Positions 25,788-27,788 of a stretch of 64,000 nt of DNA are shown piece after piece. Source of the stretch: Rhodosorus marinus CCMP1338 (lineage: Eukaryota; Plantae; Rhodophyta); assembly GCA_029953675.1 (NCBI GenBank), contig JAMWBK010000002.1, forward strand, positions 1,178,001 to 1,242,000, given 5' to 3'. The notes under the pieces were generated by a model. The model did not search any database and was not told the origin of the DNA. It was given only the letters and a program-made list of their open reading frames with translations. Within the stretch, counting starts at the first letter, position 1; each line of letters opens with the position of its first letter. Made by a program: the position numbers and the translations under genes.

Positions 25788-27788
25788 TCACGATTCCATG
25801 AGCGCCTTACAGCGCCTGATCAGATCCGAGGTGCTGATCCCATCAGTACGCGGAAGGGATTCCGTGATTCCCATATCGAAAGGTACCTGGTAGTACTTCT
25901 CCCCTCTGGAACTCAGAGCCTTCGGACCCAGGGCTTGAACTCTTTCGTTCTCTACTTTTGCGAGCTCATCCAGCTTTTGCGCCTCCATTTCGTTTCCCAA
26001 GGCACGCTGTTCAGAAGCCTTCTTGGACAGCTACAAGGGAATGTTACAAATAAGTACTTCACGTCAGAACCTGCTGGACCGTTCTTGAACTCATCCAACC
26101 ACAGCTTGGACGTATGCTCACCGCTTTCGCCTCCTCCTTCGCCAAGTACTCCATTCCGTGAGCCACGACGTGGATATTCTCCTCCTTGATGAACTCTTTC
26201 GTGAGACCAAAGCATGGGGCATTTCTAATTACCTTATCCACTCCCTTGCAACCTAGGACCTCTGCACATCTCTCCTCCATTGTCATGATTGGCGGTCGCT
26301 TGTACTTTAGCGCGTCCTCATCGCCAATAACCCCGACGTAGAGCCTGTTTCCAAGCTTCATTGCGTTCTGGAAGAGCTGCTTGTGTCCATTGTGGCACAT
26401 GTCGTAAACACCGTCGCAATACACGTTGCAGCAAACGGTAAGCAAGGGCAGGTTGAGGTATTCGCAGAGCTCTGTGAACACAGCTGTGGTTGCAAGAGAC
26501 AGAGAGTTGTAAGTTTAGAAAAACCAGCACTGACCCTTCTGTAGTCGACAATTTTCCTTCTTCAGCTTCTGCGTACCGGAGAAGTAGAAGAGAACGAGAA
26601 TTGCGGGTAATAAACGGTTCAAGAACGAGACCATGTACATCACCGGGACCCACGGGTGAAGATTCCTCAACGCCATTTTGGCCAGAATCATATCAGATGT
26701 CACAATAGCCATAACGCACCCGTCCGAAATCACATCCCACATCGTGAGAGATCCAGAAAACGGACCCAAGGGGAGCCACAGGAGAATGGATGCAGAGATG
26801 CGATAGGCCAGGATTATCAACAAACCCCAACGGGTTGCTTTTGTGCCGAGCACGTCACCAGTTAGCTCCTTTGTAAAAGGGTTGCGATACTCCAGCTGCC
26901 TCGGAAGCATCACAATTCGCAGAATGAGCAACGCGACCTGACCATAGTACCACAGTCTGGGGGTCCAATCCGCCAAAAGCTCGGCAACAAATGATTCATC
27001 AACTTGCGTCAAGTCCGTGAAAAGTCCTATGATGAGGGACACCACGTGTGTTAGCCACTCCAGTCCAAAAATTGCACGAATCGCCAAAACGAACTCGGTT
27101 ATGAGCAAAGCCTCCCCTAAAAAACAAAGAATCAAGAAGATCTTCAGAATCAATTATGACTGGGAGCACACACTTGAGTCCTCAGCAGCTGTCTATCACT
27201 TTCAGCAGAACTCTGCTAGGCGGTGTGAGAAATGAGCGACGTCAAGGCAGAGCGGTTCGCACCTGGTCCAGAGAGCAACTTGAAGTGGACAGACCGAAAC
27301 TCGTCCCTCCAGGCCATAAGATGCCCTCGGAGAAACATCATCTGCGACCCTTGTACGATGAACCACAAATTATCGTAATTGGTAACGTCTACAGCTTGGA
27401 AGATGGTGAGAATAATGAAAACAACTCCGACGTTGTCGCACGCATGATCAAATAGCTCCCCAAGAGGTGAGCTATTTCCCGTTATTCTTGCATGTTTGCC
27501 ATCAATAGCGTCGAGATTCTGGTATACGAAGATCAAAGTTGCCGCTGCTCCAGATGCAAAGGAGCGATATGGTGTATCAAGCAAAGTAACCACAATGTAG
27601 AACGCGTGTAAAATACAGACCAAACCGGCCAACGACAATAAATTAGGTGCGATCGTTGTGGGCACCAGGAGCACGAGCTTGTTCCAGAAAGGCCCTAGCA
27701 GCTTTGTACTGATAGAATTATCCACCACATTGTAAGTCCAATCCTTTACATGCTGTTTCTCCCGCTCCGTCAAGAATAAATTCACCAT
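25788..27788 (-). CDS. Fusion protein: choline/ethanolamine phosphotransferase (CDP-alcohol phosphatidyltransferase) + single-domain choline/ethanolamine-phosphate cytidylyltransferase, 556 aa
   Basis: Exons 27788-27263, 27116-26577, 26483-26122 and 26030-25788 total 1671 nt in frame with canonical GT-AG. CDP-alcohol motif [26 protein letters not shown]; cytidylyltransferase motifs DGVYDMCHNGH and RTDGISTSDLIRR. Confidence 0.9.

Follow-up and report, generated by a model that had tools for sequence, protein, structure and literature searches.

In animals, yeast and land plants, the cytidylyltransferase (CT) step of Kennedy-type phospholipid synthesis is regulated and rate-limiting, and is carried out by a soluble enzyme that is activated by membrane binding; the last step belongs to a separate membrane enzyme, the phosphotransferase (PT). 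CCT (PCYT1) is soluble and binds membranes reversibly via a C-terminal amphipathic segment, ECT (PCYT2) is a soluble chain with a tandem pair of CT domains, and the phosphotransferases CEPT1, CHPT1 and CPT1 are stand-alone proteins of about 390-420 aa. A CT fused to a CDP-alcohol phosphotransferase is found in the bifunctional IPCT/DIPPS of hyperthermophiles, which serves di-myo-inositol-phosphate synthesis; there the CT comes first and has a sugar-nucleotidyltransferase fold, the PT is of the short prokaryotic 6-TM kind, and the acceptor is soluble inositol phosphate.

The gene described here lies in a window of 64,000 nucleotides (the whole stretch of DNA that was analysed, to which all positions below refer) from the red alga Rhodosorus marinus, and encodes a CDP-alcohol phosphotransferase followed by a single CCT/ECT-type CT domain. 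The initial annotation had proposed this fusion, and the DNA, the mRNA, homology and the predicted fold all bear it out: the fusion of the last two Kennedy-type enzymes in one membrane protein is real and is expressed. The logic resembles that of IPCT/DIPPS, in that a maker of CDP-alcohol is joined to its membrane user, but here the PT comes first, the CT belongs to the HxGH class, the PT is of the 10-TM eukaryotic type, and the acceptor would be diacylglycerol; searches of the protein with Pfam and NCBIfam gave no match to an IPCT-type CT domain.

Gene structure and transcripts

The coding gene occupies 25788..27788 on the reverse strand, as do all its features described below, and runs from ATG to stop in four exons and three introns with a 556-aa product; its span equals that of NDN08_007678, the gene of KAJ8907567.1 in the NCBI annotation of Rhodosorus marinus. 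Exon 1 (27788-27263; aa 1-175) encodes the helices of the N-terminus and the juxtamembrane region, where S27 and W35 lie, and then TM1-TM4 including the phosphotransferase motif. Exon 2 (27116-26577; aa 176-355) runs from TM5 through the first half of TM10 and includes a 24-aa lineage-specific insertion (aa 245-268; 26839-26910). Exon 3 (26483-26122; aa 356-476) completes TM10 and continues with the conserved linker NLPLLTVCCN (aa 366-375; 26425-26454); the CT core that it encodes next includes HNGH (aa 386-389; 26383-26394), Y416-K417-R418, F447 and the stretch from H464 to Y468. Exon 4 (26030-25788; aa 477-556 and the stop) contributes the second half of the helical insertion in loop L5, Y522-Y523, and RTDGISTS (25827-25850; RTDGIST is aa 537-543).

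Recomputing the splice model gives a CDS of 1671 nt, encoding 556 aa and a stop, and thus reproduces exactly the three-intron, single-frame model proposed earlier; the two catalytic signatures then reported as intact (the PT motif from D93 to D118, and HNGH with RTDGIST) are likewise all present. Introns 1 (27117..27262, 146 nt), 2 (26484..26576, 93 nt) and 3 (26031..26121, 91 nt) are all GT..AG with pyrimidine-rich 3′ ends, and retention of any one of them leads to a stop, after aa 190, 375 or 496, respectively. Intron 2 preserves the frame yet contains an in-frame stop; it does not lie between the domains, but splits codon 356 within the predicted last TM helix (aa 345-365), and the exon junction in the protein reads LFYFS-A-VFTELCEYLNLPLLTVCCNVYCDG. 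The 5′ UTR (27789..28049), purine-rich on the coding strand, is about 260 nt long or longer and has an in-frame stop two codons 5′ of the ATG; two transcripts (L019 and L020) can be aligned as far as 28049.

Alignment of transcript L020 (Rhodosorus, MMETSP0011) to the window yields four blocks (28049-27262, 27118-26577, 26488-26122, and 26027-25785) that match the predicted exons with the three introns removed, so the gene is expressed as a fused mRNA. The public annotation also has one gene, of 2001 bp, at the same coordinates, and its protein KAJ8907567.1, labelled “hypothetical” in NCBI, is 100% identical to that of our splice model; three 556-aa cluster members are near-identical to it (P0143 and P0144, which are MMETSP transcripts, and P0147, whose sole source is JGI/IMG), and one transcript besides L020, labelled complete, codes for the full 556 aa. 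The model is colinear over every junction with two relatives that have no introns, a Bangiopsis transcript and a Tupanvirus gene.

The initial annotation had held that a transcript ending at the unspliced intron-2 stop would count against the fusion. Such a transcript does exist: L019, an assembled isoform from a related strain, keeps intron 2 (there 79 nt), and gene callers report it as two ORFs, one for a 404-aa PT and one for a CT of 160-173 aa. The fusion is nevertheless not refuted, because the spliced mRNA coexists with it (L019 and L020 were assembled from the same sample) and because the downstream ORF begins at M384 or later, without the first β-strand of the CT (375-380) and without D379. 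The first Met downstream of aa 356 is M384, itself inside the CT core, and a separate CT protein would therefore lack a usable start. We consider it highly improbable that the fusion is an artefact of gene modelling or assembly, or that the intron-2-retaining mRNA yields a PT-only protein beside a separately made CT, as the split ORF calls might suggest: the fully spliced and the complete-labelled transcripts speak against this, a PT read into the retained intron would stop in the middle of TM10, the downstream ORF would have to be translated as a second cistron, and the same highly conserved junction is read through in over 100 homologues, among them viral genes that have no introns and transcripts of other phyla.

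The phosphotransferase half

PF01066 matches aa 47-150 with 43.8 bits (Pfam cutoff, 22), and the closest PDB sequence to the N-terminal half is CEPT1 (E 5e-24), with CHPT1 and yeast CPT1 also found. The CDP-alcohol phosphotransferase signature (D93 to D118; 27435..27512) reads D93-A-I-D96-G97-K-H-A100-R101-(8)-G110-E111-L-F-D114-H115-A-C-D118; it fits the motif defined as D(x)2DG(x)2AR(x)7-8G(x)3D(x)3D (PMC11696302), and the motif region is nearly identical to that of CEPT1. Aligned to yeast CPT1 (8ul9/8urt), D93, D96, D114 and D118 correspond to D96, D99, D117 and D121, and E111, H115 (the catalytic dyad), Y89, W35 and S27 correspond to E114, H118, Y92, W35 and S27; the Ala/Gly head-group switch, A97 in CPT1, is A94. 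Mutation of any signature residue lowers the activity of CPT1 (PMC11696302), and by this alignment all residues known to matter in the yeast enzyme are present in the Rhodosorus PT.

Human CEPT1 has 10 TMs, made up of a catalytic unit (TM1-6) and a dimerisation domain (TM7-10), together with N-terminal juxtamembrane helices, and its N-terminal helices and CDP-binding motif are cytosolic (PMC10156783). In the AlphaFold (AF2) model of the Rhodosorus protein (mean pLDDT, 87.5; pTM, 0.80) the helix count is the same, and TM10 is followed by the 10-residue linker; the membrane half superposes on the whole 380-residue chain of CEPT1 (8gyw) over 396 columns with a target-normalised TM-score of 0.69 (Foldseek). 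The membrane half (aa 1-365) is thus predicted to be a 10-helix CDP-alcohol phosphotransferase with the eukaryotic CEPT1/CHPT1/CPT1 fold. CEPT1, human CHPT1 (9uet), Xenopus CHPT1 (8ero) and yeast CPT1 (8ul9) all share with it the signature motif, the E/H dyad, the juxtamembrane Trp, the switch Ala, and a similar predicted fold (TM-scores 0.65-0.69 over about 400 columns), but sequence identity is about 20% outside the motif region, and the Rhodosorus protein differs from them in having the 24-aa insertion between TM helices and a whole second enzyme on TM10.

The cytidylyltransferase half

PF01467 matches aa 377-549 with 64 bits (Pfam cutoff, 21); no other nucleotidyltransferase family of Pfam matched the protein, and the prokaryote-centred NCBIfam gave generic or far-below-cutoff matches only. 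In sequence searches of the PDB the best match to the C-terminal half is the first domain of human PCYT2 (58.9 bits; 3elb, 4xsv), with which K-x-P-P-[IV] is shared, and CCT follows with 52.4 bits; by score the CT is at roughly the same distance from the two. The first and the second domain of 3elb align to one and the same stretch (aa 375-556), and the fusion has a single CT domain where ECT has two. In structure, the soluble half superposes on ECT (3elb) and on rat CCT (3hl4, TM-score 0.71; also 4mvc), and with about 0.8 on Plasmodium CCT (4zcs) and related entries (Foldseek), in keeping with a common Rossmann-type fold (TM-scores 0.7-0.8).

All catalytic residues known from CCT are present, namely HxGH (H386-N-G-H389), the catalytic Lys K417 (K663 in PfCCT), R537 and RTDGISTS, and H386, H389, K417, E467, Y468, Y523 and R537 are invariant among the 120 homologues listed. 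Three residues, R418, E467 and Y522, are specific to the family and shared with neither CCT nor ECT: R418 stands directly after the catalytic Lys, where CCT and ECT have Gly in the PDB alignment, and is kept in 117 of the 120 listed homologues, and Y522 is kept in 118 of them. The Rhodosorus CT also departs from CCT in being covalently anchored at its N-terminus and in having Phe for Trp (F447); no C-terminal membrane-binding segment of the CCT type is found, since the protein ends at aa 556, 12 residues past RTDGISTS. A further difference from CCT is a 50-aa insertion in loop L5 (aa 469-518; coding span 25905..26145, interrupted by intron 3), which is charged and Ala-rich, is predicted to form a helical hairpin, and occurs only in the clade of red algae and ichthyosporeans. 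We considered whether this insertion could be a CCT-like amphipathic membrane helix and rejected the idea on its low hydrophobic moment (0.23-0.27) and negative mean hydrophobicity.

Head group

In the PT, Ala at the switch position favours choline and Gly favours ethanolamine, which its authors give as a prediction and not as a strict rule (PMC11696302); W35 and A94 of the Rhodosorus protein agree with choline-using enzymes. In the CT, the choline “aromatic box” of PfCCT (D623, Y626, W692, Y714 and Y741; PMC6060094) maps to D379, Y382, F447, Y468 and Y523, an acid-plus-aromatic pocket common to both proteins, and human PCYT2 has no aromatic residue at the position of Y468 (PDB alignment). Because Ala94 in the PT and a CCT-type box in the CT point the same way, choline is the most likely head group, which would make the product phosphatidylcholine; ethanolamine comes second. 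H464 corresponds to the phosphate-binding H709 of PfCCT, but this position varies across the family (Y in 45, F in 37 and H in 15 of the 120 homologues listed).

Distribution of the fusion

At 50% identity, 177 representatives match the fusion with E<=1e-30, and its relatives are found in red algae, ichthyosporeans, Cyanophora, diatoms, a dinoflagellate and Tupanviruses. It is an old fusion, present in many protists and in giant viruses. The initial annotation had suspected that it was uncharacterised rather than unique, which agrees both with these full-length relatives in many eukaryotic lineages and in Tupanviruses and with the literature: no published description of the PT-CT architecture was found in full-text sources, which largely do not cover subscription journals. 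We regard the fusion as a variant, so far uncharacterised, of known enzymes. Few segments are as well conserved as the junction, with Y353 in 119, N366 in 109, P368 in 115, N375 in 117 and V376 in all 120 of the homologues listed, suggesting a fixed geometry between the PT and CT halves.

The PT half is not equally preserved everywhere. Rhodosorus and 24 other listed homologues have all eight residues of the signature motif, and nearly all of them also have the E111/H115 dyad and W35; as exceptions, Amoebidium has Gln for H115, and S27 varies with T or V. Members of the diatom-type clade (85 of the 120 listed) have other residues at D1, at D3, at the Arg of the AR pair and at the catalytic His (the typical pattern is N..S..D..K, with Y in place of His); their CT is intact, and the membrane half still shares 58% identity within the clade. 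A second clade (9 of the 120 listed) has lost E111, D114, H115 and W35 and kept the fusion. Since both clades retain the fusion without the catalytic residues of the PT, it is maintained there without two-step catalysis; in every clade conservation is higher in the CT half than in the PT half. The similar stramenopile architectures that the initial annotation had mentioned do exist, in that diatom proteins share the domain order, but with the PT motif and catalytic His lost they are not two-enzyme fusions of the Rhodosorus kind.

A probable two-step membrane enzyme and its alternatives

We think it probable that one integral membrane protein performs two consecutive Kennedy-type steps, with the following arrangement. 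The PT active site would face the cytosol at TM2-TM3, and TM10 would lead through the short conserved linker (aa 366-375) into the CT domain (aa 375-556), which, the helix count being even, would share the cytosolic side with the active site of the PT. The CT would turn CTP and a phospho-amino-alcohol into CDP-alcohol beside the mouth of the PT cavity, and the PT would pass the phospho-alcohol to diacylglycerol with release of CMP, so that the CDP intermediate would be made at the membrane near its point of use. The CT would always be membrane-bound, unlike the reversibly recruited CCT. If TM7-10 dimerise as in CEPT1/CPT1, two CT domains would be paired, which could stand in for the CCT homodimer or for the tandem domains of ECT. 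From this proximity we infer channelling of the CDP-alcohol between CT and PT; membrane anchoring of the CT may be an alternative or an additional benefit, given that the diatom fusion is kept without a live PT.

Anchoring could even be the main role. The membrane domain might then serve chiefly as an anchor or regulator that holds the CT at the membrane in place of the CCT amphipathic helix, with the CDP-alcohol released to other phosphotransferases and little PT catalysis even in Rhodosorus. The dead-PT clades, with their intact CT and, in diatoms, a well-conserved membrane half, are what such a role would produce, as are the stronger conservation of the CT throughout and a C-terminus that ends soon after the RTDGISTS helix; but Rhodosorus and the 24 listed members with a complete motif span red algae, ichthyosporeans, Cyanophora and viruses, and given the sensitivity of CPT1 to signature mutations (PMC11696302), unused residues would be expected to be lost. 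For Rhodosorus we therefore judge this reading quite unlikely. Nearly as unlikely, in our view, is that both halves are active on a head group other than choline or ethanolamine (2-aminoethylphosphonate, a methylated ethanolamine and a sulfonium analogue are candidates), in a side pathway beside the canonical Kennedy enzymes. The CT does form its own subfamily, with the invariant-type residues R418, E467 and Y522 and a variable H464; the CT domain of Fom1 (PDB 5x3d), a relative, activates a phosphonate, and giant-virus MAGs contain CT relatives joined to PLP-dependent decarboxylase or aminotransferase-class domains, which suggests unusual amine phosphates. These points are set against a PT motif region that is almost that of CEPT1, the choline-type W35 and A94, the retained acid-plus-aromatic box for a cationic head group, the absence of phosphonate genes nearby, and a phosphonate link that consists of distant fold similarity only.

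The phosphonolipid idea, which was prompted by the PDB match to the Fom1 CT domain and by PMC6697681, is kept at low probability. The bacterial Ppm-fused nucleotidyltransferases of PMC6697681 differ in architecture from the Rhodosorus fusion, and a Phaeodactylum phosphonate study invokes generic PCYT2 and EPT1 from KEGG only.

A broader extension of the two-step reading, which we put forward tentatively and hold to be rather doubtful, is that the fusion is an ancient and self-contained Kennedy module in one polypeptide, which was transferred among distant eukaryotes and giant viruses and in which CDP-alcohol is handed from CT to PT without a free pool. R418, E467 and Y522 would then reflect this hand-over or a non-canonical head group, and the diatom PT would be a pseudoenzyme that regulates the tethered CT. 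On this reading, phospholipid synthesis in these organisms would do without its classical control point, the reversible membrane binding of CCT, and giant viruses would carry a plug-in membrane-lipid synthase.

Genomic context and giant viruses

The Rhodosorus gene has ordinary eukaryotic neighbours (dihydroorotase, Mob1, La protein and tetraspanin). A recent viral insertion was considered and rejected, given these neighbours, the three spliceosomal introns, and a GC of about 0.48 like that of the surroundings. No lipid or head-group genes were found beside the fusion among the Rhodosorus neighbours, on a virus-like contig (L001), or on a compact eukaryotic contig (L003/L004), and the neighbourhood gave no clue to the substrate.

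Tupanviruses have the fused form itself, like Rhodosorus, whereas some klosneuvirus-type viruses have the two steps as separate proteins: Yasminevirus, Catovirus and Terrestrivirus encode ECT-like and CDP-alcohol phosphatidyltransferase proteins in one genome, but separately. A scan of IMG/VR for fused viral copies found mostly stand-alone short CTs instead. Among giant-virus MAGs, stand-alone CT relatives are accompanied within 5 kb by a separate CDP-alcohol phosphotransferase gene at 4 of 12 loci (L006, L007, L009 and L010; the PTs are short, 189-247 aa), and at L006 the PT and CT genes are 18 nt apart, in the same order as in the fusion; such adjacency suggests functional coupling. The giant-virus copies suggest that some viruses bring their own membrane-lipid synthase.

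A natural PT-CT fusion offers a test of whether CDP-alcohol must diffuse, and of flux control when the CT is always on the membrane. The proteins with a live PT (red algae, ichthyosporeans, Cyanophora and Tupanviruses) and those with a dead PT (diatoms) form a natural comparison set for channelling versus anchoring. The distribution also bears on annotation, since the diatom proteins that now bear the name “ethanolamine-phosphate cytidylyltransferase” are membrane proteins whose phosphotransferase domain is degenerate.

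Gene structure and existing annotation

Reading the minus strand over 25400-28300 of the window, we joined the four exons proposed in the initial annotation (27788-27263, 27116-26577, 26483-26122, and 26030-25788) and obtained a CDS of 1671 nt encoding 556 aa, with no internal stop: a CDP-alcohol phosphotransferase half (PT; aa 1-365) followed by a cytidylyltransferase half (CT; aa 375-556). The three introns (146, 93, and 91 nt) are all GT..AG with pyrimidine-rich 3′ ends; keeping any one of them brings in an early stop (following aa 190, 375, or 496), and a stop codon lies two codons 5′ of the ATG. 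The PT-CT junction reads ...LFYFS-A-VFTELCEYLNLPLLTVCCNVYCDG..., as the initial annotation had it (LFYFS-A-VFTELCEYLNLPLLTVCCNVYCDG), and the product carries the PT motif (23 letters), HNGH, and RTDGIST. The first Met beyond residue 356 is M384, which follows the first beta-strand of the CT (375-380), so a separate downstream protein would have no usable start. Pfam places PF01066 (CDP-OH_P_transf) at aa 47-150 (43.8 bits) and PF01467 (CTP_transf_like) at aa 377-549 (64 bits), both well over the cutoff.

The gene model is already public, without a functional name: NCBI KAJ8907567.1 (“hypothetical protein NDN08_007678 [Rhodosorus marinus]”) matches our product at 100% identity, and contig JAMWBK010000002.1 of GCA_029953675.1, from this stylonematophycean red alga, carries one annotated 2001-bp gene whose coordinates match the model exactly. 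Its neighbors are ordinary eukaryotic genes (dihydroorotase, Mob1, La protein, and tetraspanin); these neighbors, the three spliceosomal introns, and an ordinary GC content make a recent viral insertion unlikely. Upstream of the gene, an intergenic tandem repeat with a 131-bp unit (3.5 copies, 77% matches) occupies 28531-28990, and a 21-bp perfect repeat (two copies) lies at 29155-29196. A long stretch rich in purines (G/A) extends over the promoter region and 5′ UTR (27850-28300, minus strand); transcripts of the gene begin near 28049.

Transcript evidence

The 90%-identity protein cluster of the fusion includes Rhodosorus marinus MMETSP0011 transcripts. One of them (L020, 1983 nt) encodes a 556-aa protein; its alignment to the window falls into four blocks (28049-27262, 27118-26577, 26488-26122, and 26027-25785), with all three predicted introns absent. 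Public data therefore contain the RNA evidence across intron 2 that the initial annotation called for. The cluster holds two further 556-aa members, P0143 (from an MMETSP transcript with the label complete) and P0147 (source JGI/IMG only). The same sample also yielded L019 (2062 nt), a transcript that differs from L020 only in retaining intron 2 (GTAAGC...CACAG); this intron measures 79 nt in that strain, and the copy in the genome strain (26484-26576) has 93 nt and contains an in-frame stop. A fusion mRNA therefore exists alongside an intron-retention form. On L019, gene callers predict two ORFs: one of 404 aa for the PT, whose tail is frameshifted, and one of 160-173 aa that begins at an internal Met. 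Intron 2 interrupts codon 356, within the predicted last TM helix (aa 345-365), so the retained form would give a PT missing half of TM10 and a CT without its first strand; this RNA is probably unspliced or unproductive, rather than a source of two working proteins.

Identity, fold, and catalytic residues of the two halves

Both halves clearly belong to well-studied families. In a sequence search of the PDB, aa 10-159 match CEPT1 (E 5e-24) and then CHPT1, and aa 5-350 align to yeast CPT1 over its whole length; for aa 375-556 the matches are the first domain of human PCYT2 (58.9 bits) and CCT (52.4 bits). An AlphaFold model built from a 17-sequence alignment is confident (mean pLDDT 87.5, pTM 0.80). 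By Foldseek, its membrane half superposes across 396 columns on human CEPT1 (TM-score, normalized to the target, 0.69), and the soluble half on CCT (0.71) and Plasmodium CCT (about 0.8). CCT has a C-terminal membrane-binding segment, which the fusion protein lacks, and ECT has two CT domains, whereas the fusion has one. CEPT1 has ten TM helices, with the N-terminal helices and CDP-binding motif cytosolic, and dimerizes via TM7-10 (PMC10156783). Since the fusion is predicted to have this even number of helices too, and its linker has 10 residues, the CT should lie on the cytosolic face, next to the PT cavity.

In yeast CPT1, the functional residues are the motif aspartates D96, D99, D117, and D121, Y92, the proton-relay dyad E114 and H118, and the head-group determinants W35 and A97 (PMC11696302). 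Mapped by alignment to chains 8ul9 and 8urt, the set is complete in Rhodosorus (D93, D96, D114, D118, Y89, E111, H115, W35, and A94). In Plasmodium CCT, D623, Y626, K663, W692, H709, Y714, I740/Y741, and R755 are involved, and choline sits in a “composite aromatic box” gated by loop L5 (PMC6060094); by alignment these residues map to D379, Y382, K417, F447, H464, Y468, Y522/Y523, and R537. With these known catalytic residues mapped, both halves look catalytically competent. At the position of Y468, the PDB-sequence alignment shows no aromatic residue in human PCYT2.

Distribution of the fusion family

Searching 5.8 billion proteins with a word index gave 460 matches at E<=1e-5, and nearly all of the best 120 span 98-100% of the query sequence; HMMER, run exhaustively over 1.84 billion representatives, gave 177 at E<=1e-30, mostly of 450-600 aa. 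Relatives come from another red alga (Bangiopsis sp.; MMETSP transcript, 75% identity), the ichthyosporeans Amoebidium and Sphaeroforma (about 50%), the glaucophyte Cyanophora, many diatoms (including Thalassiosira, Cyclotella, Nitzschia, Seminavis, Chaetoceros, Eucampia, and Coscinodiscus), the dinoflagellates Kryptoperidinium and Polykrikos, and two Tupanviruses. Using intron-free relatives as queries, tblastn recovered the exon blocks. The junction segment is among the best conserved of the protein (in the best 120 matches, Y353 in 119, N366 in 109, P368 in 115, N375 in 117, and V376 in all 120), a point in favor of the two domains having a fixed geometry relative to each other. This fusion is both real and old.

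Rhodosorus and Bangiopsis cluster with ichthyosporean-type proteins at about 50% identity. Two insertions, one of 24 aa in the membrane domain (26839-26910) and the other of about 50 aa in loop L5 of the CT (25905-26145), are common to Rhodosorus, Bangiopsis, Amoebidium, Sphaeroforma, and one ichthyosporean-type protein (homologues P0002-P0005), and are found nowhere else in the family. The grouping and the common insertions suggest gene transfer between red algae and ichthyosporeans, directly or via a virus.

Full-text searches and the reading of candidate papers turned up no description of the PT-CT architecture, and its members in databases are predicted proteins auto-named “cytidyltransferase-like,” “choline-phosphate” or “ethanolamine-phosphate cytidylyltransferase”; the family thus appears uncharacterized, though visible in databases. 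To our knowledge, the sole characterized fusion of a CT and a CDP-alcohol phosphotransferase is the archaeal and bacterial IPCT/DIPPS enzyme, in which the domain order is opposite to that in Rhodosorus, the CT fold is different, and the acceptor is soluble.

Intact and degenerate phosphotransferase motifs and the proposed function

Among the 120 best matches, the CT signature is essentially invariant, and the full PT motif is kept in 25: red algae, most ichthyosporeans, Cyanophora, Tupanviruses, short virus-like metagenomic proteins, and one small clade. A diatom-type clade (85 of the 120, including P0036, P0028, P0062, and P0067), named “ethanolamine-phosphate cytidylyltransferase” in databases, has D1 replaced by N/S/H, Arg by Asp, D3 by Lys (82 of 85), and the catalytic His by Tyr (84 of 85); its membrane half is 58% identical within the clade, and its CT is intact. 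These proteins look like a conserved pseudo-phosphotransferase, perhaps a membrane anchor, with a live CT. A further clade (P0070 and relatives, nine among the 120) has lost E111, D114 (D3 to Asn), H115, and W35; two of its sites (L003 5171-6784 and L004 1109-2722) lie on compact, gene-dense, apparently intron-poor eukaryote-like contigs, near genes for histone H2A, CDC37, and aldolase.

In the mechanism we propose, the CT half would make a CDP-amino-alcohol that the PT half would at once use on diacylglycerol. The Rhodosorus fusion is probably a bifunctional membrane enzyme with two live, coupled activities, and choline would most likely be its head group; no new chemistry is implied. The clades with a degenerate PT indicate that membrane anchoring can by itself keep a fusion in place, so channelling should not be assumed as its reason; that the membrane half serves mainly as an anchor or regulator in Rhodosorus too, as apparently in diatoms, is quite unlikely beside its complete residue set. 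A non-canonical head group is unlikely. The PT Ala and the Asp-plus-aromatic pocket of the CT lean toward choline, modestly so because ECT and CCT score similarly, the rule that Ala favors choline and Gly ethanolamine is a prediction in its authors’ own terms (PMC11696302), and the family has invariant CT residues of its own: R418 (Gly in CCT and ECT), E467, and Y522. That PT and CT are really separate products, as the two ORFs called on L019 might be taken to mean, is highly improbable beside the spliced fusion mRNA and the conserved junction. The family is a natural experiment on channelling and on control of the rate-limiting step, with a built-in comparison of live and dead PTs and a giant-virus angle.

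Unfused pairs and other fusions in giant viruses

Stand-alone relatives of the CT (about 140 aa) occur on giant-virus MAG contigs, and at 4 of 12 loci a separate PT gene of 189-247 aa with an intact motif lies no more than 5 kb away. In L006 (4613-5616), 18 nt separate the two genes, which follow the order seen in the fusion; L007 (6010-8236) and L010 (5992-11638) have similar unfused pairs, each of these three with a CT of about 140 aa, and in L009 (5644-10345) the PT lies near a CT inside a 656-aa protein. In BFVD, the two steps are separate proteins in Yasminevirus, Catovirus, and relatives. Such viral pairs provide Rosetta-stone-type evidence for two activities working together.

Two giant-virus MAG proteins join the CT to other domains: a PLP-dependent decarboxylase domain (PF00282) in the 656-aa protein of L009 (5644-7614) and an aminotransferase class I/II domain (PF00155) in a 757-aa protein of L014 (3472-5745). 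It is possible that each makes and activates an amine-phosphate head group in one protein.
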